Assembly (NCBI GenBank): GCA_024704765.1
Contig: JAKMXF010000288.1
Span: 372,001 to 436,000 of the forward strand
From: Oopsacas minuta
Taxonomy: Eukaryota; Animalia; Porifera
DNA length: 64,000 nt
Direction of reading: 5' to 3'
Positions within the stretch are counted from its first letter, which is position 1, and the number at the start of each line of letters is the position of its first letter. The notes below the pieces were generated by a model. That model was not told where the DNA came from. It did not search any database and saw nothing but the letters and a program-made list of their open reading frames with translations. Shown in pieces: positions 1 to 46,000 of this stretch. The position numbers and the translations under genes were made by a program.

Positions 1-67
1 AAAAGCTGATTTTATTGTTCTTTTGACATTTGATAAATATTTCTATATGATTATATTTTGTTGAGAT

Positions 68-148
68 GTTGCTATGGCCTAGTGGACGTGTGCTAAAGAC
101 TTAACTGCTGTATAGAGGCGAGGTCCGGGTTCGAATCCGGGACAGGAA
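68..148 (+). pseudogene. tRNA-like sequence (tRNA pseudogene or tRNA-derived SINE head)
   Basis: Pol III A-box-like TGGCCTAGTGG (75-85) and B-box GGTTCGAATCC in a T-arm-like hairpin (125-141). The acceptor stem does not pair, so it is not a functional tRNA. Confidence 0.55.
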
Positions 149-180
149 GAAAATTTGATTTATCAGCTATAACACACACA

Positions 181-710
181 ACAAATCGCATCTTTCCTTC
201 CATGTGAAGAAACGGCGACAAAAATACACGAAGTCACCTCAAGAAATCTTTTGTTAACATCAAGTATTTTTCTTAAAATATTTTCTCCATTTCATTCAGT
301 AAAATGAGAGAATCGTGTTTATAGAGTTTAATATCATCAAACATTTCAATTAAACAACCTTGCAAAGACTCATACTTTGTCCAATGGGCTGTCGCACTCT
401 GAACACAAAGATTGACACTCCTCCGTGGCAAGGCTACCTACGTTATCCTCATTGGAAAATGGAGTTGTGTTAGGAAAGGTTGTGGTGGAACAATTTCGGA
501 AATATTCGCACATTGCATTTGTATGGCGCGCAGCTTGCGTTGCTCGACATATGAAAAATGATAGAATAGTTTCATATCATCAAGGCTAATAAGGGTTATG
601 TCACGAATGGTTTTGACACCTAGCTCAAATAGCTCGAATCTAGATTCTAGGTCGTGTTTGATGAAAATCTCTCGCCATTTTCTTTGCTTAGGTGCTTGAA
701 AATCTGCCAT
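181..710 (-). pseudogene. Decayed caspase paralog with SAM-like N-terminus
   Basis: ORF 438-710 (KHDL...LGVKT...F.Y.E.RK) matches the N-terminus of the caspase at 4006-5307. After a stop and frameshift, 240-181 reads EVTSCIFVAVSSHGRKDAIC, the caspase catalytic-His motif. No QACRG exon follows. Confidence 0.7.
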
Positions 711-722
711 TTATGTATATTC

Positions 723-979
723 TACAGTTCCGGCAAAAAGTCTGGAATATTGTTGACAAAATGCGAATATTCTAGTATTGGAACAAAAGGTTACAACATT
801 ATTATTTCAGAACGTTTTTCTCAACCTATAGTGGAATGAATTACTATATTAAGGTAGGCTAATATTATCATCAATAATAATAGGCAGTAATTAGTAAATA
901 ATATTATCAGGATATTCCTGAGTAAATTCAACAAAGTTGAAAAATAATGAAATATTCCAGACTTTTTGCCGGGACTGTA
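723..979. mobile_element. Tc1/mariner-type MITE
   Basis: TACAGTTCCGGCAAAAAGTCTGGAATATT (723-751) is mirrored at 951-979 with one mismatch. The ends are TA (putative target-site duplication) followed by CAGT. Confidence 0.8.
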
Positions 980-1444
980 AATTGTTGGAGGATATTATGA
1001 TCTGAATTTGCCTTTTTAGAATCTAAATTAGTCAAACTATAACTACCCAAAAGGTGTGAAAATATTCACATATCCCCGAGGTACACATCTAAACCCCCCC
1101 AAAGTACCCATGTGCCAATTTTCTTGCCAATAGGATATCTCCCTGTAGGAGCTGTACTAAAAACGCCAAAACTTTAACCTATGCTGACACTTTGATATTT
1201 AACATATAAGTGTCGGCGATAACAAATAAAAATTCAATACCATCCGTCGTTCCAGTTTCCGAGGAAATTCCGGAAAGGGGCGTATCAGGATTATGCATAG
1301 TCCGGGGGAAAATGCCCCTGGGTTTTGCCTCCTGAGACCATCACTGGTTCTGATTGAGAAACTTCAGATTTCTATAAAACAAACTGATATTCATAATTTT
1401 TCGTATAAAAAAATAAAAAGCGAATATTATCCCATTTTAAATAT

Positions 1445-2377
1445 TCATATAAATAACTGAGCACAAAGCGTGTGTCTGACCTCTGGTGGTTGTTTTATAC
1501 ATTTCACATGGTCTGTATCATGTTTGTAGTTCTGTAGCATATGATTACTTGTAGCTGTCAACAGATCTAAGATATTGGAATGACCATGCATCTCATCGAA
1601 GCATTCCCGTAACGAGGTTACAAACCAAGATCCGTTGTCTTTATCACGCCAAGCTTTGTAGCCCTCCACGCATGAATAAGCGACGAATAAATCCGTTTGC
1701 CGGGTCGCAACTTCCGGGAGAGAGTCCGAAACTATTTGGCTGTCCATATTGTCTCCTCGACACGCCTGTATGAATAAAACTTTGGGTTTTCCCACCAAAT
1801 GGTCCACTTCTTGTAGTATATTTAGAATAAAACTTACTTCGATATCTCCGCCATCAAAACAAGCCAGTTTATCGGGCCCCGCGCCATGTGTCGAGATGGC
1901 AATGAAAACACTTCTCATTTTTGCATTGTCCTTCACTACATTTTTAATGAATTCTTTAAAACCCAACTCATCTCCCTTTTTATTACAACAAATATTAGTT
2001 TTTGTAATTATTTTTAGTCTTAAGAACTTGAAAATGTGTTCGAAGTGCTCTAGATCCTTTTTGGCGCCAAGTCGTTCAGTTGAGCCACATTTTTCGTTCA
2101 CAATTATAACACCTAGTCCTGTGTATTGATCCCCTTCTAGATGGTATGATGGGAGACAATCGAATTGGGGTCTTAAAGCTAGGCCGTTATGCTTCAAATA
2201 TTGTTTGTCTCCATGTTGTATCAAATCCCCAATACAAACATTTTTGTTGTCCCAGTCGTAGACTTTTATGTGATTGTCTGTGTCAGTGCTTTTTGGGTCG
2301 AAAAGTTGTGGGAAAAAAGGTACATGTTCCACAGGTGTACCAGGATCCAAAGCTAATGGACCTGTGCTTTGGACCAT
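1445..2377 (-). CDS. Caspase (peptidase C14A), short prodomain, intronless, 310 aa
   Basis: STHG and QACRG catalytic motifs, S1 Arg residues (ERLG, AWRD), GSWF motif and putative linker site IVSD/S. Confidence 0.92.
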   Translation of the reverse strand: MVQSTGPLALDPGTPVEHVPFFPQLFDPKSTDTDNHIKVYDWDNKNVCIGDLIQHGDKQYLKHNGLALRPQFDCLPSYHLEGDQYTGLGVIIVNEKCGSTERLGAKKDLEHFEHIFKFLRLKIITKTNICCNKKGDELGFKEFIKNVVKDNAKMRSVFIAISTHGAGPDKLACFDGGDIEVSFILNILQEVDHLVGKPKVLFIQACRGDNMDSQIVSDSLPEVATRQTDLFVAYSCVEGYKAWRDKDNGSWFVTSLRECFDEMHGHSNILDLLTATSNHMLQNYKHDTDHVKCIKQPPEVRHTLCAQLFI

Positions 2378-2556
2378 CTCTGATCTTGATGGTAATTCTA
2401 AACATAAATAAAACGGGTCAGAAACGAAAAGGGCCGTGTAGCCTCAACAAACGGGGTGTTAGGGACACCGACACCAGTTTCCACGTTTGTGTAGGTTACA
2501 CTGTATATTGTGTCGATGAATTTGAGACACTATTTTCGGGAGAGAAGCACATTCCA

Positions 2557-3636
2557 TCAATACTTACCTGTTTCTAAGCAACGAACATTACTTTCAGACT
2601 TTAGCAATAAAAACTTTTTCAAAGTGGATTCGAAATGAGAGGGTTGTGCTACTTTCGTGTTATCTCTCTCCCTATTACATCTTAACATCAAACTATGATT
2701 TGTTAAAGTTAAGATATCCATAAAATGGTAACGATCGGAGTATTCCTTGTAGGTGTTGAATAGTTCGTTTAAGAACCATGCTCCCTCTGTTTTAGTTCGA
2801 TATGCCTTGTAATCTGGCGTACAGGCGTACGAAATGAGGTAATCAGTCTCTAATGAGACTATTGGGTCCTTTTCCATCGCGTCAAAGTAGACTTTATTTG
2901 TTAAATAATCACTTTTATCGCCTCGACATGCCTGTATGATAAATATTTTTGGTTTCCCTTCAAGGACTGGACAATTTTCTGGGTTAAATATCGGTAGAAT
3001 TTCGCTACGCAGTGAAATACGACCCCTATCACTCCCGAAGAGAATATCATTCTCACCTCCGTGAGTGCTAAATGCTACGCATAACATGTAATGTTTGTAT
3101 GTAACTTCCTTCGCTAATTGTTTCAGTTCTTTTAGAATCTCCTGGGATGTTTTTTCTTCACATTTGTATACTTTAAGTTGCATCATTGTGAATATCTTAT
3201 CTAAGTTATCAATATCTTTCCCAACTCCTGGCCGTGTCTCGCCCCCCGCGAAATTTGTGTTCACGAAAATCGCGCCGATCCCTCTCTCATCTTTATTTGG
3301 CATTTCATAGTTAGTGTCCTTCAGTGGTTGATAGGGCATTATATCAGAGAATATAGAATCGTCTCCATGTGGTATTGAAGTTGGTTGCGGTGTTTGGTCT
3401 AATTGTCTTTGCATGTTCTTATGCAATAGAGGTGGGAGTAAGATTTTTTGATTATCCACACATTGCTTAGAAACGTCAAAATTAATACTAGGTTGCTGAT
3501 CAGGGCTGTTGTTCATTGTTACTTGTGGATATATTGCTGGTTCTTGTTGGTTAGGTGGTGGTGTCCTCAAGGGGCTATAGAGTATATGCGTAGGACTCAT
3601 AGCTGTGCTAGGAGGATTGCGAAACCTTTCTGCCAT
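2557..3636 (-). CDS. Caspase (peptidase C14A), P/Q-rich N-terminus, intronless, 359 aa
   Basis: STHG and QACRG motifs, GKPKIFIIQ, AYRT and GAWF; putative linker site VYFD/A. Confidence 0.93.
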   Translation of the reverse strand: MAERFRNPPSTAMSPTHILYSPLRTPPPNQQEPAIYPQVTMNNSPDQQPSINFDVSKQCVDNQKILLPPLLHKNMQRQLDQTPQPTSIPHGDDSIFSDIMPYQPLKDTNYEMPNKDERGIGAIFVNTNFAGGETRPGVGKDIDNLDKIFTMMQLKVYKCEEKTSQEILKELKQLAKEVTYKHYMLCVAFSTHGGENDILFGSDRGRISLRSEILPIFNPENCPVLEGKPKIFIIQACRGDKSDYLTNKVYFDAMEKDPIVSLETDYLISYACTPDYKAYRTKTEGAWFLNELFNTYKEYSDRYHFMDILTLTNHSLMLRCNRERDNTKVAQPSHFESTLKKFLLLKSESNVRCLETGKY

Positions 3637-3656
3637 TATAAAGCTAATTAGTTAAT

Positions 3657-3880
3657 ACAATCAACTCTCGTTACACCTAACACGGTTATATAGAAATATC
3701 CGCGTATATAGAAGTGTGAAAGTGTACAAATATGGTCCCAAACCGTCAAAGTACATATAGTAGACTCTGCTTAATAAGCTCACATCGGGAACAAGCCATT
3801 TTGGCCCGATTAACCGGTGGCTCTATTAAGCGGAGTCTGCTCTATGTTTAAGTTGTATCGAAGTAATTATTACGGTAACT
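3657..3880. mobile_element. MITE with a second MITE inserted (about 3757-3844)
   Basis: The outer part resembles the family at 6580, 8583, 15580, 42826, 46441 and 60395. The inner part has inverted ends TAGTAGACTCTGCTTAATA...TATTAAGCGGAGTCTGCT and resembles 43320-43396. Confidence 0.55.
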
Positions 3881-4005
3881 TGACGCACGTTTACCAGCCC
3901 CCCCAATCAATACTCACCAACATACAAACTGTTAAGCTGTAATTCGCGTAAAAAGACAAAAATAAGTCTTATATTATCACAAAAAGATCCATAAAAATTT
4001 TACAA

Positions 4006-5307
4006 TTAGGAACTCCTGGGCCTTACATCAACCAGTTTAGTCAAAGTAGATACTAACTGACACGTTTGTACATAATTACACTCACCGCTTGCTTGTATAG
4101 ATTTCTGTATCACCAGCTGATTAGTGAAAGTTATTATAGCTGATAAATTAAAATCGTTCCTATACTTCTCAAAAGCTCGTTTTAGCTGTGTAACGAACCA
4201 CGAACCGCCTGTTGTACTTCTAAACGATTTGAAGCCTAGAACGGCTGAATAGGCAATGAGAAAATCACTTTCGAGTGTCACTGAAGCTCGTTCGTAGCAA
4301 TCTCCGCGGATTTGTGGGATATTCCCTTCCTTATTGCCTCGACAAGATTGTATGAAGAAGATTTTCGGTTTCCCCTTTAGGCTCGGGCAATTGTCCGGTT
4401 TGAATGGTGACACTATGTCGCGGTGGAGTGAGTAGGGTTTTTCATCTCTTCCATAAAGCAGGTCGCCTTGATCCCCGTGAGTAGATATTCCAATCACGAA
4501 CATATCGTGTTCCGAAAGATCTTGCCTTTTGGCAGTTATGGCGATTATATCGAGTATTTCCGCCTTGGTGTGATCCGGATACACTTGAATCTCTAGTCCC
4601 ATTTCTCGGAATAACTCACCAAAATTGATTTCATCTACTACTGCACCGGCTCTGTTTTCTTGCTCTGGGAATTCTTCATTCGTGAATATTAATCCAAGTC
4701 CTCTTATTTTATTGCTGTTTGTATTTGGGTAGTAAAGCTCTGTCAACATTGGTTCTGCATCTGACACTGACTGGGGGTTATTTTGGTTGTGAGCAGTAGC
4801 TGGGTGATCGCTTCCAGTCCTCACCACTGGTTGAGAGTGTTGTTGTGCAAACACGGGTGGATAGGAATGTTCACATACAGGGTTCGGGTATGACGGGTAT
4901 CCATAAATACTAGGTGGTCCTGATGGTAAATGGTTGACTGGTAACGAGTGGGACATGTTAATGTCCATTGGGCCTCTACTTGTAGTCATCGGCAGCGGGT
5001 TGATGCTTCTTGGTGGAAGTATTTGCGGCTGGACATACTCACCGGATAAGGATGGGCTCGATGAGCGCGGATCCCCGAGTTCGTCGAGAACGGTCCCCGT
5101 TTCTTGTGCTTTTGTCATGGTAATACAAACTTCACGAAGAGCATCGAATTTACGGAGTTCTGAGTAATCGAAAAATAGATTCTCTTTCAAATAAGTTTGT
5201 TCTACCCTCGCCATGTCTTTGAATGTTTTTACTCCCAAAATAACCAACATTTCTTTCTTATGTCCCAAGTCATGTTTGAACAATTCTGATTCTAATGAAG
5301 GGTCCAT
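4006..5307 (-). CDS. Caspase with SAM-like N-terminal domain and Pro-rich linker, intronless, 433 aa from ATG 5307
   Basis: STHG and QSCRG motifs, GKPKIFFIQ and GSWF. The N-terminal ~60 aa is helical with a SAM-like hydrophobic pattern. Confidence 0.9.
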   Translation of the reverse strand: MDPSLESELFKHDLGHKKEMLVILGVKTFKDMARVEQTYLKENLFFDYSELRKFDALREVCITMTKAQETGTVLDELGDPRSSSPSLSGEYVQPQILPPRSINPLPMTTSRGPMDINMSHSLPVNHLPSGPPSIYGYPSYPNPVCEHSYPPVFAQQHSQPVVRTGSDHPATAHNQNNPQSVSDAEPMLTELYYPNTNSNKIRGLGLIFTNEEFPEQENRAGAVVDEINFGELFREMGLEIQVYPDHTKAEILDIIAITAKRQDLSEHDMFVIGISTHGDQGDLLYGRDEKPYSLHRDIVSPFKPDNCPSLKGKPKIFFIQSCRGNKEGNIPQIRGDCYERASVTLESDFLIAYSAVLGFKSFRSTTGGSWFVTQLKRAFEKYRNDFNLSAIITFTNQLVIQKSIQASGECNYVQTCQLVSTLTKLVDVRPRSS

Positions 5308-5604
5308 TTTAATTTTGGCTAGGAAAGGAGGATATGAAGAAATTGAAAATATAGAACTGAAGATCGAGGAAAATATTCCACACATTTAGAGCTAAGTATT
5401 AATAGATTTATCATATTTGAGTTTTTACGAGAGCCAAGTGATATTTGAAATTGGATCATGTATATTGGTAACACCAAGACAAGCATGACCCCAGGTTCAG
5501 ACCGATCATATAACAAAAGACTCTATAACTCTGTACTAATTCAAATCAACATGAATAATAAATCAATTCAAATCTACTACTATCTTCCTCCTTCTCCAAA
5601 TAAC

Positions 5605-8600
5605 TCAATAAACTTTACTACTACTCTCCTTCAAGGCTAGTGTTCTATTAAAAATAAGCTTATTTTTACTAGAATCACTGTCCACACAGAAATATCCAAC
5701 TCTCTCAAACTGGAATTCATCAAACACCTTCGCTTCTTCTACACTACGATCAATATACGCGGTTACAACTTTGAGAGAATTTTTGTTGCAGTCTGTAATA
5801 TATCCACCTGGAACTACCTAAAGGAATGAATATAGCCATTAGCAACTAATACGTGCAATGGAATGTCTTCATCCATAATTCATTGACAAATTGAACTGAA
5901 ACTGAAACTATCGACCGTTGTTGGCGGAAAGATGTAAGGAGGAAATTTTGCATAAAATTTCATTTTCCTCGAATTAGTTTTGAGCTGTCGTACGGGCTTT
6001 TTGAGAGCCCTTGGGTGTTATGAGAGACCTCAATACCTCATATTTTGTGCTCTACAATTTTCCCTCGCGACCATCTTACCGCCTTTTTGTATGCCCACAG
6101 TCTATTGTATACCGGTTATAAGCACATGGATTGCTATTCCTCCAGGGTGTTTGTATAACCGGCATATACTGTATCTCTCAATATATTGTTTTCAAGAGAC
6201 ATACCTTTGGATCTTCAGGGTGGCTATGTTTGAATAGTTTCTCATATAATCTGACTTGACACTCCAAATGGTTGCTAACCCAGTGTATCCATGCCTTTGG
6301 CTTGTTAGTATCACTAACTAACTCACAAGTAACTTTCACTTCATTTATAGCTCCATTTATGTCTTTCAATATTTCTTGTATTGATATGGTGTATCCGGTG
6401 TGACGCAGGCCTACCGCTTGTCCGGGAGCTAGTCGCCGATAGTCTGGTAACAAAGTGTCAGACACATCACTACGTTCGATAAACACCTCTCTAAAGGGAG
6501 GGGGTAATTTCGTTAGAAATTATCGGAGTTGTTTTTTAAGTGAATGACAGAGCTGTCCTTAAATTCAGAGTTAATCCCATTATATCGAAGCTCAAGGGAC
6601 CATGATAATTCCTTCGATATAACCAATGGAATATATGTTACTTTGACGGTTTGTGACCATATTCGTACAATTTCACACCTCGATATAAGCGGGTATTTCT
6701 ATATATCCCTCCCTGTTAGATGTGTCCAATGCCTAAACCGTGACATTAAGTAAACTAACTTTTCGAAATTCACTTTATGAAATGTAGTATTATCCTTCTT
6801 TGGAAAATCTGGAATATCAACAGAGATCGGTTCAATTTGTGGAAAATTCGTAACAGATATTTTGACACGATCAAATACTGCCATAGCTCGTCTAGCCGTC
6901 ACATCAAGAACCTCAGTGATACACGCGTCGAGCATGACAGGTTCTATCACGGTTTGTGTCTGAGTAACTCCAACCTAACAACGAGATAGATACATAGATA
7001 TGTTTAGCGGAACACCTCGAATAATAGCCCCCGTCTCCCTCGCTGAGGGGTGTAGCCAAATACCAACGAGGTAACCATGGAAACTGGGACATAACACGTC
7101 ACAGAAGCACGATAGGGAGTTGGTGAATATATTCATGGAATATAGTATGTGATTATATGTTATGTCCCCGTACAAGGGTGTTAAAATATGGATAATCACC
7201 CTGGCTACTATTCGTTATTGATTCATACCTTGGCACAAAAGGCATTGATGGCATCTGGGGACACTCCTCTCCTCCTTAGCGCGGTCAAAGTGAACAATCT
7301 CGGATCGTCCATCCCATCGATAATTCCCTCGTCAATCAGTTTACGAAACTTCCGTTTGGAAATAACTGTCCCAGTCAAGTTGAGGCGGGAATACTCCCAT
7401 TGAACTGGACAATAAATCCTCAGCGCGTTACATAGCCAGTAGTAAGCAGATCTTCTAGCCTGGAACTCCTTAGTGCATAAGGAATGTGTGATATTCTGTA
7501 TAGAGTCACAGAGACAGTGTGAATAGTCGTATGTGGGATATATGCACCATTCGTCACCTGTACGAGGGTGTGGTTGGTATTTGATACGATAGGCCACTGG
7601 GTCTAGCTTCCCATCTTCCATTGTGTACTGTAAGATTGATGGTAAACAAACAAACAAACAAACAAACAAACAAACAAACAAACAAACAAAAGCGTACGCA
7701 AAAAACTAGCGAAAGGAAAAAATCTAATATTACAATCGTTAGTGCCTCCAATTAATAGTGCCAGTGTTGGCACAGATTGAAATTGTTGATTTTACAGCTC
7801 CGCTCCTAGTTTAAACAACAACTCACCTTCATTCTCAATGTAGCCTCTCCTTCCTTCAACAACCCAGCTTTCATGTCCCTAAACAATTTGATACTCTCCT
7901 CTATTGGTCTATCCCTCCACGGAGAGAACTCCAGATTCCATCCTTTGATTTCATCGTGTTTTTGATGATCCACATAAGCATGTCCGGTCTGAATTAGCTC
8001 AATAGCCCAGTCGTATAATTGCTGGAAGAAGTCAGATGTGTATGTTATCTATTAGAATAATAACAGTCATTGTCACCTAATTTCGAGGCCAGTTAAGGAG
8101 GCTAAATTGACCCAAAATACCTTACAAGGTTCATGACCCATCCATGCCACCATTTCAATAATTTGTGTGAAGAATCTTTTCTCTTCTTTCTCCGGGTTTG
8201 TATCATCAAATCTCAAATAACAGATTCCTCCGTTTGCTTTAGCATAGCCGAAGTTGAAATTCATTGCCTTGGCATGACCTAAGAAATCACATATAGAGGT
8301 AACCAAAGGTGACTAAAGGGTACCTTCAATGGGCACGAAGGGGCTTGTAATAATTCCCTAAACTGACCAATATGTAATATCCCATTAGGTTCAGGTGGGA
8401 ATCTTGTAATTACAATTCCACCAGTTTCTTTCAAATGTTGAGAAAGGAGGTCTCTTGTGAATGGTGTCACTATGTACCCATCTGTTTTGTGGTTCTCTCC
8501 TGGTTTGTGGAAGTTCAGTGCATCTCCAGATATTTCATATGATTGTTCATGTTTTGTCACCTACAAATGTACTGTTAATTCTTGTTATATAGAAGCTCAA

Positions 8601-12800: not shown

Positions 12801-14746
12801 GAAGAAAACACAACTTAGCAAACCTCAAGTTTCTGAACAAATAATTGAGACTATTCCTGAAATGGATCTACCAGTGCGGTCGAAAAAAACATCGACACCT
12901 CCCCCACAAAGTTCCAAAGGTGACTCCTTAGAGAGTTTTTTCCTAACTTATAAAGATTCGGACAGTGACCAAATTATGGCAGGGGGTGTTGAAAGGTTCT
13001 GTAATGATTTGAAAGTCGATCCGACGGATTTTATCGTCCTTGCGATCGCTTGGAAATTCAACGCCGATCAGATGTGCATGTTCACGAGGGAGCAGTTTAT
13101 TACTGGATGTAGTGAACTGAATGTTCATAACATCAAAGAATTCAGGAAGATGCTTCCAACTCTAAAATCGGAAACTTCTGACAAGTCAAATTTCAAAAAG
13201 TTATATTATTTCACTTTCCAATTTGGCCTTGAGCAAGGACAACGTACTTTACCGATCGAGATGGCTGTCCCACTTTGGCAATGTGTCTTTCTTGGCGCGG
13301 AAAACAGACCAAAACTCCTTGACGATTGGTTGACATTTCTCCAAGAATCGAGCGCTAAATTTATTAGCAAAGATACTTGGAACATGTTCTACTATTTCAT
13401 TGAGACCGTCCAAGTGGATTTGTCCAACTATGATGAAACCGACGCGTGGCCGACACTTTTTGATGATTTTTATGAATTCCAAGAAGACAAGAAAAACACA
13501 AAAACAGCCTAAAATATGTACCATAAATAATAGAGTTTTATGTCTGAGGTGTGGAAATGTATATGTATTAAATAGTTTGTTTTGTTGTAGTATCCTATGA
13601 TGGCAAGAGATTATCTTTTGATACGAAAGACTATTGTAAGTAAATGTTTGATGTTTTGTTATAGCTAGCTAGCACCTTTAGCACATAATGGACCAGAGCC
13701 TTGCCACTACGAGGGGTCTGTTATGACAAAACTTGTCTTTTCACTCGAAACCCCTGGGAACAATTGAGAAATCGATGTCCGCAATCACGTTTGGAGTGAC
13801 AAATGAATTCTGATAATTTATAAATTTTGTTACTAATCTAGGTAGACAGAGATAACAATCGTATGGGAATCATATCAAGGTAGTTGTCTAACCACCGTAT
13901 TAGCAGATCCAGAATTGTCCAAAGGGACTGGGCTAGAGCGTTGTGAGTACTTCAGCGGTTCAGCCCCCCTGCCTCCTGGATCTGCCCTTATTTAAGGTGT
14001 CGGTAATTAGCATTCCACGGGGCCACGAATCAACAGTTAGCACCCCATAAAAGTGTGAATCGAGTGTGTCCTGAAGACCCATTGTAAATTCACCTTGTTT
14101 CCATGTTTAGGCTAATAATGTTATTATTTGTTTGTTTACTTCTAACAGGACAACAACAAACAAAGAATGGCCACCTGTTCCTAATAACGTTAGAGTAGAA
14201 GAATTTTCATCAAATATGTTAATCTTCGCACACACAGGAATTGATCAGGTATACATAGGAGAAAATCTCTAAAATGGTGTTAAAAATATCTTTGGACAAT
14301 TTTTTGACCCCAGGTGGATATTGACACCCTCCAGTGCACCTATTGTCCAATTTTCAAGTCAATCGGACAAGTATAGTATACAGAATCTGTTTATATATTT
14401 TCACACCTTTTAGAATGGATTTGACTTTCAACTAACGAGCGTAGATAATCCCAAAACAAATTTTCCACGGAGATTCTCAAACTATGCAGTAACTTCAGGT
14501 AGGTGACAGAATATGCAGATTTAAATCAGTACCATATAGTTATCAATTCTTACCCAGTACGGGGGGATTGAGACCTTTCAATAACCTCACCCCCTGGGGC
14601 GTGTTCAGAGGTCAATCCAGTCCGGAGTGGGTAAGGAAAGGTAACATACCTATCTCACTATAGGGTTGCCAGATTACATAAGCAGATTATATGAAGCAAC
14701 AAAAGACTTGGGAAGAATCGGAAATGAAGAAATACCTGATTGTTAA
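9835..14746 (+). CDS. STARD7: START-domain lipid transfer protein, STARD7/PCTP-like; 5' exon(s) unresolved
   Basis: Hand-stitched GT-AG exons in consistent phase: 9835-10058, 10255-10304, 10364-10474, 13591-13635, 13842-13879, 14149-14248, 14414-14498, 14664-14746. They read [17 protein letters not shown]...[35 protein letters not shown]...[36 protein letters not shown]...[15 protein letters not shown]...[19 protein letters not shown]...GLPDYISRL, collinear with the STARD7 START domain. Confidence 0.88.
10075..10215. mobile_element. Dispersed MITE-like family D, representative copy
   Basis: Ends GTGTAACCTC...GGAGGTTACACTGTA. Related copies lie near 2440-2505, 19060-19205, 24655-24735, 36645-36730 and 44826-44925. 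Confidence 0.6.
10866..12085 (-). CDS. RPSA: 40S ribosomal protein SA (uS2); exons 12085-11543 and 11219-10866
   Basis: Motifs [33 protein letters not shown] and [11 protein letters not shown]|KRMRG...DLFFYRDP; one GT-AG intron in phase. Confidence 0.97.
12778..13512 (+). CDS. DCUN1D3: DCN1-like protein 3, intronless
   Basis: Myristoylation-type start MGQNSTK (ATG at 12778). The PONY/DCUN1 domain has [29 protein letters not shown] and [14 protein letters not shown]. Confidence 0.9.
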   Translation: MGQNSTKPKKTQLSKPQVSEQIIETIPEMDLPVRSKKTSTPPPQSSKGDSLESFFLTYKDSDSDQIMAGGVERFCNDLKVDPTDFIVLAIAWKFNADQMCMFTREQFITGCSELNVHNIKEFRKMLPTLKSETSDKSNFKKLYYFTFQFGLEQGQRTLPIEMAVPLWQCVFLGAENRPKLLDDWLTFLQESSAKFISKDTWNMFYYFIETVQVDLSNYDETDAWPTLFDDFYEFQEDKKNTKTA

Positions 14747-15061
14747 TTACAATAATTATTGTGTCGTATTATTAGCTAATTAGTCAATCAATCTTTTCTC
14801 TTACATGTATATATTGTTTGTGGTAATGGGGGAACGAATATTAGCGTTCGGGACCCCTGTTGACAAGGTGTGAATTTATAGTATTTTAGGAGACGGCTAC
14901 AGCAGAACTAAAAATTATTGATTGAGACTTGAACTTCAATTTTGGTTATTTTAGTCATGTCTAGACACAGATAAATGTGTCCAGTGACACTACTGCTTGT
15001 ACCACTAATAAAAGTGGCAGCAAATAACAAGTTGAAAGTTGAGCCAATAAATATCCATTAA

Positions 15062-15150
15062 TACAGTGAATCCCGATTATAAGAACACCGTCTGGAACTG
15101 GACACAATGTTCTTATATCCGGTATGTTCTTATAACCGGCATTTACTATA
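15062..15150. mobile_element. Dispersed MITE-like family C, representative copy
   Basis: TACAGTGAA...CCGGTTATAAGAACA core recurs near 6040-6170, 10494-10630, 15768-15822 and 37460-37607. Confidence 0.55.
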
Positions 15151-15320
15151 CCAAACTTTTGTGGCACTTCCTTAATAATAGCGGGACATCGTGGACGTAG
15201 CATATTTGTATTAGACTGGTAGGTAGTCGGAATTATATCTATGGTAGGTGAAAATGTAACACAGAATGTAGAATATAACTATATATGATCTGCTATATAC
15301 AAACAGCTGATTAAGCAAAG

Positions 15321-16516
15321 ATGGCACGGATCGAACTTGTAAACCAAATTTTATCTGTTTCAAATAAAGCAAGAATTGCTACTTTCTTGACAACAGATAA
15401 GGATAGATGGAATGTGAAAGGAAAAGAAGCTATGAATCGATCAGCTGTTCTGGTACCGATATGTTCGTATCGAGGGAAACTGAGTTTATTATTCACCATT
15501 AGGAATGTTAATTTGTCCTCTCATAAGGGGCAAGTAAGGTGTGAAAATTTATTTTACATATATTATACAAGTAACACCTGTTATATCGAAGCTTAAGAGA
15601 CCGTGATATTCAAATCGATATGACAGATAAAATATATGTTTCTTTGACGGTTTGGGACCATATTTGTATAACTTCACACTTCGATATACGTGGGTATTTC
15701 TATAAATCCGTGTTAAATATAACGGAGAGTATAGCTAATATGAAAATAGCTATAGAGTGGGTGCCGGTTATAAGACACCCTTGGGAGTAGTAAACATGTT
15801 CTTATATCCGGCATTCACTGTATGTGTGTATTTTCTAGTTTCCCAGGGGGTCACGAGTCTCCAGGAGATGAGTATCCTATCGGGACAGCGATAAGAGAGA
15901 CGAGAGAGGAGATAGGGTTATGTATTAACAGAGAGGATGTTATTGCTTGTATTGGACCTGTTCCTAACCGGGTAAGTAATTCGTCCCTAACCGGACAGAA
16001 TTTCATAAGAAACCTTGCCCTCTGAACACGCCCCGAGGTGAAGTAATGAGTGTCATATCACACCTGAGCGGACACAATTTTAGAATTCTAACTATTTAGA
16101 AATTGGTAAAGAATATCGCAGCAGTGATAGCAGATATTGGAGAAGTTAATGAAGATAGTTTGACACTTAATACTAATGAGGTAAACAAGTAAACAACAAA
16201 CATACAAACAAACATACAAACAAAGAAACGACAAACAAACAAAGAAACGACAAATAAATAACAAACAAACAAACAAACTTTTCATACATTTTAGGTGTCA
16301 GAAATATTTTTCCTTTCATTTGAAACTATATTAACAGAGAAAAACCAAAGATATACAATCTTTAGAAATTTTAGACACTTTGGTATGCCTGTCTTTCTAG
16401 GGGGACCCAGACACATCTGGGGTCTAACTGGAACTATACTAGACATAGTCCTGGAAATGATCCTACCCGAACAGCTGGAATATAAGCCAATCAGATTGAG
16501 ACCTTGGAAAAAATGA
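15321..16516 (+). CDS. NUDT8: Nudix CoA pyrophosphatase, NUDT8-like (4 exons)
   Basis: LLFTIR...SSHKGQV|SFPGG (splice 15538/15839), Nudix box GGHESPGDEYPIGTAIRETREEIGL, and IWGLTGTIL. Confidence 0.85.
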
Positions 16517-16728
16517 ATTCCTATGTAATTTGTATGTGAATGTAATGATATCTATATTTAGCTCATTTTGACATTCCAATGGAGTATAACATTCTTAAAC
16601 ACGGGTTTGTAACCAAGGAAAGATTCTCTTATCTAGCAAATGAATATTTTCAACAAACGAGCTAATAAATAAATAAACACAGCCCCATTCCCATTCTGAT
16701 AAATAACAACAAACAAACACAAATAATA

Positions 16729-16759
<31 letters not shown>

Positions 16760-16918
16760 TAGCACACTTGTTTGTATATATCTAATTTACATCCTCCTAT
16801 AACTACTAAACAACAACACAACAACAGATAACAACACATCCATTCTATTAATGTAAAAACAATAAAAGTACCAGAGTTTTAGATAAATACTAATAAACCC
16901 AATTTCTAATCGTCATAA

Positions 16919-18454
16919 TTAGAAAATTGAATTTTGTGTGGGTCCATAAGGGTTTGTGGAGCTCCAGGTGGGGTAGGAGGTCTGTGGCGGTGCCGCAGGG
17001 ATTTGGGTCGTGGAAATCTGGGTGGGGAGCTTGGAGTATGCGTCGCCGCCGGTTAAGCGGACCTCTTTCTCCTCCCATACGTGTGCTCTTGATTTTGAAG
17101 GCTTGTTTACTAAACTAAGCTCGTCAAGGGTACGCTCCAGGCCCGTTTCTACATTGAAACCGAGGCTCTGTTTGGTCTGTCCAGCTGTGGCAGTGTTTGG
17201 ATCGTTCAATTTTTCTGGCTGCAAGATTGTGTCGAATAGTGTCGGTTCTGAAATGGTAGAGTGAGTGGTGTTAGAAAAGGGAGATGGCTCAAAAGTTGTC
17301 ACAGTTGGGAAAGGATTCCCTGTTGAGAAACCGACCGAATTGGTGGCGGTTGTATCGACCCATGGGTCTTTAGTTGGCGCAGGACTATTGAAAACATCTT
17401 TTAACTCTAGGAGAGAGCTCTCTTCTCTTACTTTTTGAGGTTTAGCGTATAGCGCCTCGTCAGAAGAAGCGAATGGGATTACTTTTTCTACCGATAAAGT
17501 TGTTTTAAGCGGCTGAGGTGATAGCACCCTTTTCACGTTACTATTAGGTGATGTAGTTTGGAAACTGGTTGGTGATTTGGACCCATGTGGGGATAATTTA
17601 CCATCTAGGGAGGCCAGATATGTATCCATCGCTTGGAGGAGATCAGCACCGCTCGCTGAGGAATCAACAATCGATTGATCCTCTACCCCAACTTCGCTAG
17701 CAACGGAGAAATACGTCCGTGCGTTTTCACAACGATTCAAATATTTTTTATAAATTTCAAGACCTTCTTTGGCATTAGTCTTTTTGAAATCGAAATAATG
17801 CTCTAACATTATAATTATTCCTTCGTTATAAAGAGCAAAGAGTTTCACTAAGTCTTGGAAACAGCGCACAAATGCCGCGTATATTACCGCGTTACTCACT
17901 TCATGAGCTTGAGGATCAAAATTCAAAAGCGAATCGAAAAGTTCTTGCAGTATGGGAAAATGAGTCATCAATTTTGCGATTGTCATCGTGCGTAGGAATC
18001 CATTCTCACCTCTTTTGACACGACAGTAATCGAAACCAGCCCTCTGGTAAGTGGTTGCCTTATGGTTCAGATATCGAGCATATTTCCGCACAAAAGTTGA
18101 CATATTCATCGTATCGATACTCGATCGATCCGACAAGTTATCTGTGTGGAAATTTGTAGTCCTTGGGGCGAGATATTGTATGAATCTCTCATTACCTTGG
18201 ACCATAAGAAAATGCGCCGTAACCAGAGCCTTGAATGACACAATCCAGTTTGTGAGTTTGACCCTTTCGAGTATAAAAGTTGCCAAATCTGGAATACTCA
18301 CCATCGGTTCATTTGTACACAGGACCAAATAATCAACATGTTTCCTTTTTGGCGCGATTAACTCATGACTACTCGCTTTACAGACCGCCTTATTCAAGTT
18401 GTCACCTGTCAAAGTATTTTTCGCCGCCTCTATTTTATCAATTACAACAGCCAT
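16919..18454 (-). CDS. PICALM: ANTH-domain clathrin assembly protein (PICALM/AP180 family), intronless
   Basis: KAVCKASSHELIAPKRKHVDYL, NWIVSFKALVTAHFLMVQGNERF and QDLVKLFALYNEGII, followed by a disordered tail with DPW/NPF motifs. Confidence 0.93.
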   Translation of the reverse strand: MAVVIDKIEAAKNTLTGDNLNKAVCKASSHELIAPKRKHVDYLVLCTNEPMVSIPDLATFILERVKLTNWIVSFKALVTAHFLMVQGNERFIQYLAPRTTNFHTDNLSDRSSIDTMNMSTFVRKYARYLNHKATTYQRAGFDYCRVKRGENGFLRTMTIAKLMTHFPILQELFDSLLNFDPQAHEVSNAVIYAAFVRCFQDLVKLFALYNEGIIIMLEHYFDFKKTNAKEGLEIYKKYLNRCENARTYFSVASEVGVEDQSIVDSSASGADLLQAMDTYLASLDGKLSPHGSKSPTSFQTTSPNSNVKRVLSPQPLKTTLSVEKVIPFASSDEALYAKPQKVREESSLLELKDVFNSPAPTKDPWVDTTATNSVGFSTGNPFPTVTTFEPSPFSNTTHSTISEPTLFDTILQPEKLNDPNTATAGQTKQSLGFNVETGLERTLDELSLVNKPSKSRAHVWEEKEVRLTGGDAYSKLPTQISTTQIPAAPPQTSYPTWSSTNPYGPTQNSIF

Positions 18455-43013: not shown

Positions 43014-46000
43014 ATGGATTCACTTCCAAATTATCCAAAAGAGTTTGACCCAAAAGAAGTAGAAAAGTTACGTAACTTTCTTAACAAAGCACTTCTATCA
43101 AAATACTTTACACCTTTCCTTAGCAACGGGGTGTATAGAGTGAAAGATCTACAGGAACACGTGAAGGATGAATTCCTATTGAGTGTTAATATGAGCCAAC
43201 CAGAGAGAGACAGGTTCTGGAAGAATGTGGAGCAAACAAGGAAACCACTTTGGAAATTGAAGGTGTGATAATATTATTAGCTCAAATTATTCTTCTGGGC
43301 AAAATGGACCTCCGAACACAGTAGGCTCTGCATAATATAGCCGCCGGTTAATCGGGTAAAAATGGCGTGTTCCCGATGTGAAAGCGGAGTCTACTGTATG
43401 TTTGAGTTCACGACACATTTGTGCCACTTTTCACACCTTATTATCTACTCCTTTAGCAAAAATTCCGGAGATATGAGGATCCTGATTCGAGTATTTATGA
43501 AGAAATTGGACAATCCAACACAACTCCTGTTAGTGGCGCCATTCTGATTAGTCATCAAGAAATAGTGGAATTAGGAATTATTGGTACAGGAAATTTTGGA
43601 GAGGTGTCAAGAGGAATGTGGCGCTATAACCACAACATGGCGCCTGTGAGTTGATAAACAAACAAACTAACTAACTAACAAACAAACAAACTAACACTCA
43701 TAATTGGTGTCAAAATATGAATATATACTACTTCCACTTTTCTAGAAACCAGTAGCTGTCAAAATAGTGTCCACAGTTTCAGGTGAGAACAGAGATCAAA
43801 TTATGAAAGAGGCAGAAGTGTGGAATAAATTGGAACATGAAAATATTGTTAGATTATATGGTGTTACTGTCACACAGCCTTACAAAATGGTATGTTGTTG
43901 TTGATTTCACACCTTGTGACAATATTTTACAAGATATTTAGTTTCAATTCCAATATAGATTATGGAACTAGCACCTAAAGGTTCACTAGACAAGTATCTG
44001 AGGTCTAAAGTTAATCAGCTGTCAATTGAAAGGATGTGGCAATATTCATGTCAGATATCTAAAGGAATGGAATATCTACATTCCAAGAGAATTATACATA
44101 GAGATCTTGCTTGTAGGAATGTATTACTTAGTAATGATACACAGGTATGTTTATTGGCTGTTGTGTACTTAGATTAGTAGCCTGGGTGATTATTCATATT
44201 TTAACACCCTTGTACGGGGGACATAACATATAATCACATACTACATTCCATGAGTCATAGCATTCTATACATGAATATATTCACCAACTCCCTAACGTAC
44301 TTCTGTGACGTGTTATGTCCCAGTTTCCATGGTTACCTCATTGGTATTTGGCTACACCCGTCAGTGAGGGAGGCAATCATTGAAAGAGGCTACTATTCGA
44401 GACAAAGGTGTGAAAATATACATATAACTAATCATTTTTAATAAACCAATGAAATGAGAGGGTTTGTAACAATCTAAGAAGTTCATCTATAAATAGAAGT
44501 GATTACGTCATCATCATTTCTAGTTGTACCAGTCTAGCGCTCGTATCTCCTGATAATCTATAGGGTAACATTCCTGCAAATGTCACAAGTTTGCGCGCCT
44601 TTTCTTGTAACAGCATTATGTCCTGCCTTATCTGCTGATCAGCTGTTCCATGGCCAATCATTTCTTGTGTTTGTTTATAGAGATTGTGTATTGAAATCTT
44701 GATAGAAAAATTGTATTATTGAACCATGGATAATTGCAATGTATTACAGCAACCCTCTATACCTATTTTAACATATTCTGTGGACCACCAAGGGGTTCAT
44801 GTACCCCAGGTTGGGAACCCCTGTATCGCAGTGTACCTCCACAAACAGGGTGCTAGGGGCGCCGAAATGCTACCCCGTTCCCCGTTATATTACAGAGATA
44901 TTCCCAGTTTGTGGAGGTTGCATTTTTTCATTTTGCCAATTTATCCATGGTTCTTTGATATACATTCAAAATGGTCATTGCAAATAATCTGAAAATTCAC
45001 ATTTTTAACATACCATTGTTGCAAGAATGACGTCAGGGAGACTTCTCCTAATCTCTTCCTCCAAGGTGTGAAATTTCGCAATACTATTATCAACAGTTAC
45101 ATCGGATTTAAGCGGGAAAATACCCAAACGGTCCATAATTTCTAGGGCAACATCGAATTGCCCCGATTTGAAATATTCATGGAATTGTGTCAGATCTAAA
45201 AGTAGATAAAAAGTTGTACACTTCTCGCGTGTGGCATTGTGTCCTGTTGTCTTGAATCTGTCAGCTAGTGAGTATGCGTATTGGATTATTTGTTGTTTTT
45301 CTGTGTCTCTTGAGCTTTGAGAAGATGATATTAATTGGGACATAGAATTATTGAGGAGGTCTAACACCTGTGAAGAAATGTAAACAAACAAACAAACAAA
45401 CAAACAAACAAACTAACAAACCTTTTGATGGTTACCAGCTAAATCATATAACTTAATAGCATCAATAACCAATCCATGGTTCTCTGATTTTCTAGCTACA
45501 TTACTAATGACGTCACTGATAGATTCCTTATGAAACTTCTCAATTAATCCTTGTTTCCTGACTCCATCAGGCGCCAAACTGCCTAGCAATAACTAGAAGA
45601 GATTGGAATGTTATAACATAGCAACAGGAAAGGGGTTAGGAATGTACATGCCTCGTATTCTCTTGACTCCCAAACCATCTCAGCCAATGAATTCACGAAC
45701 AAATCTTCACCGCCACCTAATGGAAAATGGTGTGAAAATAAAGTATACATGATTAATCATATGAATATTTCACACCTTCCATGCCACGTAACAAGAACAT
45801 ATATTGTATGGCTTCTCTAGGATCTGTAGTCACAAATTTCCTTGTATATACTTTGATCATTCTAGCTAGATTTATTTGAGGTCCAGTTGGTGTGTCGGTT
45901 AGAAATGCTGCTTGAGCAGTTGATGTTGATTTTATCAGATTTATTTGGTGAAGAGAGATCGCTAGATGGATCGCATGACACCTGAGTGTTTCTATCCGCC

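Follow-up and report, generated by a model that had tools for sequence, protein, structure and literature searches.

A caspase with a SAM-type N-terminal domain in place of a death fold, encoded in a tandem caspase array of Oopsacas minuta

Results

The SAM-caspase gene and its start codon

The window analyzed here is a 64,000-nucleotide stretch of Oopsacas minuta contig JAKMXF010000288.1 (positions 372,001 to 436,000), and positions below are numbered within it. Part of a tandem array of caspase genes occupies the minus strand of positions 1-5400, and the first member of the array, located directly downstream of the glutaminyl-tRNA synthetase (GlnRS) gene, encodes a caspase with a SAM-type N-terminal domain (hereafter SAM-caspase). 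The minus-strand open reading frame at 4006-5385 encodes 459 aa, and the product that begins at the ATG at 5307 is the 433-aa protein P0001 of the protein collection. This coding sequence (4006-5307, minus strand, 433 aa plus stop) is a single exon, as indicated by the open reading frame listing, the match in the protein collection, and contigs of the RNA-like run X4 described below. P0001 has three parts: it begins with a conserved domain of 70 aa, continues with a Pro-rich linker of approximately 120 aa that is predicted to be disordered, and ends with a caspase domain.

A start at the in-frame ATG further upstream (5385) would lengthen the protein by 26 residues, beginning with MCGIFS; this alternative was considered and rejected. 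This ATG lies 5' of the acceptor site at which a leader is joined, and the position of the acceptor therefore sets the start at 5307 rather than at 5385. The lack of the upstream ATG in the related locus L002 and the M-D/N/E motif at which all paralogs begin agree with this choice. The approximately 80 nt upstream of the start (5308-5385), including TCTATATTTTCAATTT, are conserved at the nucleotide level in four genomes (the window and those represented by loci L002, L005, and L006). This stretch and its counterparts in the three other loci stay open in frame and the upstream ATG is not conserved; its role is probably in regulation or 5' processing, not in coding.

Transcription and leader junctions

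Four public runs, all derived from one sample, contain the DNA of the window. Three of these are DNA-like, with flat depth and contigs that pass through introns, and the fourth, X4, is RNA-like. Depth in X4 reaches approximately 23,000 and 16,700 on GlnRS exons versus 35 in the intron between them, one X4 contig skips positions 2398-2567 (GT..AG on the minus strand), and the ends of X4 contigs at AG acceptors carry additional letters that are absent from the genome at those sites. The SAM-caspase gene is covered by X4 contigs and is transcribed.

The loose end of an X4 contig at 5320 marks the AG of a 3' splice acceptor (5319-5320, minus strand), which follows a pyrimidine tract 11 nt upstream of the ATG and is joined to a non-genomic leader. 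At this junction the contig carries 11 foreign letters, 9 of which are shared with a foreign stretch of 20 letters at 3645, a short distance 5' of the ATG of the next caspase gene, and a pyrimidine tract and AG precede both junctions. The shared leader ends in ...AAAACTTAC and is joined at the AGs at 5319-5320 and 3644-3645, 8-11 nt upstream of the start codons. Its sequence was sought within the window and is not encoded there, and an equivalent TTAG followed by C occurs upstream of the ATG in relatives. Each junction is represented by one contig, which makes the support good, short of conclusive. Spliced-leader trans-splicing has been reported in the glass sponge Aphrocallistes vastus (PMC10282587), and this precedent, together with the leader junctions, leads us to read the leader-bearing contig ends as probable trans-spliced 5' ends. 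A single X4 contig (5291-5602) also runs unbroken from the end of the GlnRS gene, whose stop lies near 5605, across the leader acceptor and into the 5' end of the SAM-caspase gene. This one contig could reflect read-through or polycistronic transcription that is later resolved by trans-splicing.

Conservation of the N-terminal domain

A sequence-only reading of this DNA had proposed that the caspase begins with a SAM-like prodomain, and the residues on which that proposal was based were found where it had placed them (5307-5122). The domain as delimited here comprises residues 1-70 (5098-5307, minus strand). When the whole protein was used in a word-index search, 12 relatives with 31-43% identity were returned, all from ENA assemblies, and a search restricted to residues 1-75 returned P0001 itself only. 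The N-terminal 68-70 residues are common to 12/12 relatives, one of which carries the domain twice. Among these 12 full-length relatives, the N-terminal domain is 39-56% identical to that of P0001 and the caspase domain 35-55%, as against 18-31% for the linker. The segment is also conserved in the paralogous fragment at 438-710, as had been claimed from the sequence alone (BLASTP, 35% identity over 60 aa, E 1e-07; family HMM, E 7.6e-25). Because identity in the N-terminal domain is far above that of the linker, and because the domain is conserved both in relatives and in the 438-710 fragment, we regard it as a separate and constrained unit.

Predicted fold and homology of the N-terminal domain

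The AF2 model of the N-terminal domain, for which the input alignment was shallow (15 sequences), has a pLDDT of 93.9 and a pTM of 0.80, and predicts five helices (residues 3-11, 15-23, 29-33, 37-43, and 48-69), the last of which is long. The full-length P0001 model reproduces this five-helix fold. When the model was compared with solved structures by Foldseek, the top 50 PDB matches were almost all SAM domains, with probabilities of up to 1.00, TM scores of 0.70-0.74, and weak E-values (best 0.17); these included SLy1, tankyrase, Eph receptors, SAMSN1, caskin, BICC1, and p73. In an exhaustive VIA search of 48,161 chains, ranks 1-29 were all SAM domains (Z 9.2-6.9, with 58-71 of 72 residues aligned), and NusA and "SAM-like" domains of the helix-hairpin-helix (HhH) type start only at rank 30. 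A structural search of the ESM Atlas returned mostly SAM-bearing families, with TM scores of 0.67-0.77. CARD, DED, DD, and PYD folds were absent from the top 50 of Foldseek, from the top 50 of VIA, and from the Atlas rows. SAM-type clusters also appeared in an ESM feature search at 0.82-0.85, a result that is taken as a lead only because these scores fall below the reliable range.

Pfam returned no match for residues 1-72 of P0001 and no death-fold match in any of 15 family members. The gathering score of the Pfam SAM families is not reached by the N-terminal domain of P0001 or of these 15 members, in which sub-threshold matches were to SAM_EPH (E 0.0078, two members) and SAM_2 (0.07, one member); P0029 matched SAM_TNK at 0.072, which is likewise sub-threshold. 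A profile-profile comparison by hhalign of 22 SAM-caspase N-termini with five Pfam-verified SAM_TNK domains gave a probability of 98.1% and an E-value of 7.6e-14 over 57 columns. One of the five references is the SAM of the ACK kinase encoded in the window (43014-43268), and the test is partly circular because the other four were chosen from matches of the family profile.

The family profile was also searched by HMMER against 1.84 billion representative proteins, and 20 proteins were recovered at E ≤0.001. These were 13 caspases with the N-terminal domain, two true SAM proteins, four repetitive HhH proteins, and P0033, which has only scattered short Pfam matches. The two SAM proteins, P0035 with one SAM_TNK domain and P0032 with three SAM domains, were matched at a library-wide E of about 4e-4 and over profile positions 1-57, whereas the HhH proteins were matched over positions ~18-41, a single hairpin whose scores are summed over 4-8 repeats. 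Against PDB sequences, the profile gave a chance match only (E 1.7).

The ACK SAM at 43014, to which the sequence-only reading had compared the prodomain, is a real SAM_TNK domain. Its central proposal, a SAM-type prodomain rather than a CARD or DED, is borne out by the AF2 model, the structural searches, the profile-profile comparison, and the library-wide HMM search, and the predicted structure of the N-terminus resembles solved SAM domains and no death fold. Judged by predicted fold and sequence homology together, the N-terminal domain is a member of the SAM clan that is nearest to SAM_TNK (PF22931) and too divergent for current Pfam thresholds.

Linker and caspase domain

Residues 71-199 (4711-5097, minus strand) form a Pro/Ser-rich linker that is predicted to be disordered, with pLDDT values <50 at residues 80-188 of the full-length model. 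Its length varies among relatives and its alignment contains large gaps. The caspase (Peptidase_C14) domain, residues 200-433 (4009-4710, minus strand), is well modelled. Over residues 228-451 of the 459-aa open reading frame it matches Pfam Peptidase_C14 (E 1.8e-42) with a score of 146.1 bits, where the cut-off is 21.4. Its best PDB sequence matches are Drosophila drICE (1e-31), Spodoptera Sf-caspase-1, and caspase-3/6/7, with E-values from 1e-31 to 1e-25, and the catalytic domain is thereby closest in sequence to effector, not initiator, caspases.

Alignment with drICE and Sf-caspase-1 places the catalytic His277 of the STHG motif (4477-4479, minus strand) on their SHG, and the catalytic Cys322 of QSCRG (4342-4344, minus strand) on their QACQG. 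On the same strand, Arg219 (4651-4653) aligns with the arginine of "SRAG/SRTG" in solved caspases and Arg363 (4219-4221) with that of "SWRNTTRGSWF", and these two residues and Gln320 make the S1 pocket for Asp complete by alignment. Asp336 of the IRGD motif (4300-4302, minus strand) lies in the intersubunit loop, which is predicted to be disordered (residues 325-346), and is a candidate site of (auto)processing; 13/13 relatives retain this Asp together with Ile or Val at P4. As far as alignment can tell, P0001 is a caspase (MEROPS C14A, Pfam Peptidase_C14) with all catalytic and S1 residues. The earlier description of an intact caspase tethered by a disordered Pro-rich linker is supported by the Pfam match, the active-site alignment, and the full-length model.

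The caspase array and its relatives

The profile search of 1.84 billion proteins yielded 13 SAM-caspase clusters, and those that were traced lie in tandem arrays in six ENA assemblies. A SAM-caspase is the first gene after GlnRS in five of these assemblies, and the sixth has its array beside ATG3. A family-HMM scan of the loci showed a conserved layout of DCUN1D3, RPSA, GlnRS, SAM-caspase, caspase, caspase, two or three SAM-caspases, and ATG3, which holds in ERZ25072730, ERZ25766962, and ERZ25072740. The array in ERZ25071281 is larger, with at least six SAM-caspases, one of which has a double SAM, and further SAM-caspase arrays are present in ERZ25069837 and ERZ20067936. Overall, the SAM-caspase design is kept in at least seven related genomes. 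Two genes encode caspases with tandem SAMs, P0007 (L010, 10001-11383) and a 539-aa product (L001, 11429-13045), both of which have two SAMs ahead of the caspase domain.

Several members of the family have decayed or lost catalytic residues. In the window, the fourth array member has decayed: what survives is its SAM domain (438-710, minus strand), identified by BLASTP and the family HMM, with no caspase half behind it; the caspase HMM gave no match on this open reading frame. Array genes 4-6 of the relatives encode SAMs like this one, to judge from its similarity to P0023 and P0024. In the relatives, the SAM-bearing paralogs P0011-13 and P0022 are catalytically dead, with Gln for His, loss of both S1 arginines, and an altered Cys motif, and P0030 and P0031, likewise catalytically dead, keep the SAM and have Tyr in place of the catalytic His. 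Dead and live SAM-caspase paralogs were observed in the same arrays (L001, L009, and L003).

Downstream of the SAM-caspase gene, two caspase open reading frames that appear intronless are one gene (1445-3636, minus strand), whose product has a tandem pair of complete caspase domains and lacks a SAM. A 170-nt GT..AG intron (2567-2398), supported by an X4 contig, lies just before the stop of the first frame, and its splicing joins the two exons (3636-2568 and 2397-1445) in frame into a product of 673 aa. An equivalent in-frame intron is found in L002, L005, and L006, where the products are 699, 712, and 718 aa. Between this gene and the SAM-caspase gene, at about 3724-3876, lies a high-copy repeat at which contigs break and have many different continuations; over this repeat, depth summed across the contigs of the DNA runs rises from approximately 73-350 to 12,900-17,500.

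Discussion

What is new here is an intact, transcribed caspase with a SAM prodomain in place of a death fold. A literature search for SAM-caspases returned no description of one, and a search for Oopsacas together with caspase returned nothing relevant. When the whole protein was searched against the Atlas, no cluster combining SAM and Peptidase_C14 was found among the nearest 40. The amphioxus domain-shuffling paper lists TIR-SAM and no SAM-caspase (PMC2575513), and a paper from the Aravind group contained nothing pertinent. The TNFR-caspase and LRR-caspase of that study (PMC2575513) resemble the SAM-caspases in that both represent lineage-specific shuffling of domains onto a caspase domain, although the SAM-caspases constitute a conserved multi-gene family and the amphioxus case is a single gene model.

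The overall design of P0001 is that of the long-prodomain caspases (caspase-9, -2, -8, -10, Dronc, and CED-3), in which a small helical N-terminal interaction domain is followed by a flexible linker and a caspase domain. These proteins also share with P0001 the His/Cys dyad, the S1 arginines, and the Asp site in the intersubunit loop. However, P0001 is predicted to carry a five-helix SAM rather than a six-helix death fold, and its catalytic domain is closer to effector caspases. The joining of a SAM to a proximity-dependent enzyme has counterparts in SARM1 (tandem SAM octamer and TIR), tankyrase (SAM polymer and PARP), and ACK1/TNK2 (N-terminal SAM_TNK and kinase). The structural and profile searches with the P0001 SAM recovered SARM1, tankyrase, and the SAM_TNK family, and tandem-SAM members exist in the SAM-caspase family as well. 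The SAM-caspase differs from these enzymes in that its effector is a caspase and in that self-association is predicted here by analogy. A further parallel is offered by the caspase-8/caspase-10/cFLIP cluster, which, like the SAM-caspase array, consists of tandem paralogs with one prodomain type and includes live and dead proteases. The shared domain of the array is a SAM and not a DED, and the likeness is one of analogy, not orthology.

Caspases are activated by proximity-induced dimerization and loop cleavage. SAM domains commonly self-associate, as is established for polyhomeotic and TEL, and SARM1, tankyrase, and ACK1 are enzymes that are switched on in this way. Many other SAM domains remain monomeric, or have heterotypic partners, RNA, or lipids as their only ligands. 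Against this background, P0001 is best explained as a caspase zymogen whose SAM_TNK-like SAM occupies the place held by CARD or DED in long-prodomain caspases, tied by the flexible linker of ~120 residues to a catalytically complete caspase domain. The SAM is most likely the homotypic association module of the family. SAM-SAM contacts, both between copies of the same protein and between live and dead paralogs of one array, would bring caspase domains together, and the resulting proximity would control dimerization and processing at Asp336. The catalytically dead SAM paralogs may then serve as cFLIP-like partners or decoys. To the reading that the SAM mediates association within the family and so gates activation, with dead paralogs acting in the manner of cFLIP, we assign a probability of roughly 0.6 on the basis of known SAM and caspase behavior. 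By the same analogy, activation of the caspase through SAM-mediated self-association or polymers is plausible.

In the main alternative, which is conceivable if rather unlikely, the SAM instead serves for docking or localization, binding a non-caspase partner (a SAM receptor, kinase, or adaptor) or a membrane, and an upstream protease cuts IRGD with no SAM self-assembly. Effector caspases such as drICE and caspase-3/6/7 are constitutive dimers that are activated by an upstream protease, not by proximity, and the docking explanation gains weight because the catalytic domain of P0001 is effector-like, with effector caspases as its best PDB sequence matches. The nearest Pfam subtype is also SAM_TNK, the SAM of the ACK kinase, one of which is encoded in the window, and heterotypic SAM pairs (EphA2/SHIP2, EphA5/SAMD5, and CNK/HYP) rank among the top structural matches. 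Yet in the library-wide search this subtype of SAM was confined almost entirely to caspases, and these assemblies yielded no candidate for such a partner. The retention of the same SAM by dead paralogs is also easier to explain by association within the family than by docking to an outside partner.

The remaining explanations concern the identity of the domain or its relevance. A divergent CARD, DED, DD, or PYD missed by sequence methods has the expectation raised by other long-prodomain caspases as its sole support; it is already contradicted by the confident five-helix model with SAM topology, by the lack of any death-fold chain in either PDB top 50 or in the Atlas rows, and by the lack of a death-fold Pfam match in the members, and we consider it the least credible of all. 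We also think it very improbable that the domain is a helix-hairpin-helix (SAM-like) nucleic-acid-binding module that recruits the caspase to DNA or RNA. The family profile does match repetitive HhH proteins at E-values of 1e-4 to 1e-6, P0023 has a weak match to RNA_pol_A_CTD (E 0.018), and NusA AR and the RNA polymerase alpha-CTD appear lower in the structural lists, but the profile matches are confined to the one repeated hairpin, as opposed to the longer SAM matches, and true SAM domains fill the first 29 VIA ranks. Little credence is likewise given to the suggestion that the gene is a lineage-specific relic whose N-terminal domain has no present function. Such a view is in keeping with the turnover of the array and the decayed copy at 438-710, but the gene has an intact reading frame and a full set of catalytic residues, RNA-like coverage extends to a processed 5' end, and across at least seven genomes the conservation of the SAM is on a par with that of the catalytic domain.

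Induced-proximity activation of caspases is known almost entirely through death-fold assemblies, namely the apoptosome, the DISC, the PIDDosome, and the inflammasome. A conserved, expanded, and expressed family of caspases that uses a SAM in one of the earliest-branching animal lineages thus offers a natural test of whether the death fold is special for caspase control or whether any self-associating module is enough, and of whether pairs of live and dead paralogs like caspase-8 and cFLIP arise repeatedly. As a tentative extension of the association reading, which we hold to be possible though doubtful, polymers or rings of SAMs from live and dead array paralogs might set the threshold of protease activation, in which case glass sponges would possess a death-fold-free system and an independent invention of induced proximity.

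SAM-caspase fusions with other SAM subtypes may exist in other phyla. The closest non-caspase relative of the SAM-caspase SAM is P0035, a 105-aa protein with a SAM_TNK domain encoded on a 1.7-kb contig from an unrelated run (L007, 127-1613). It is directly followed on this contig by a 363-aa open reading frame without a recorded Pfam family, and the two may constitute another pair of SAM and effector.
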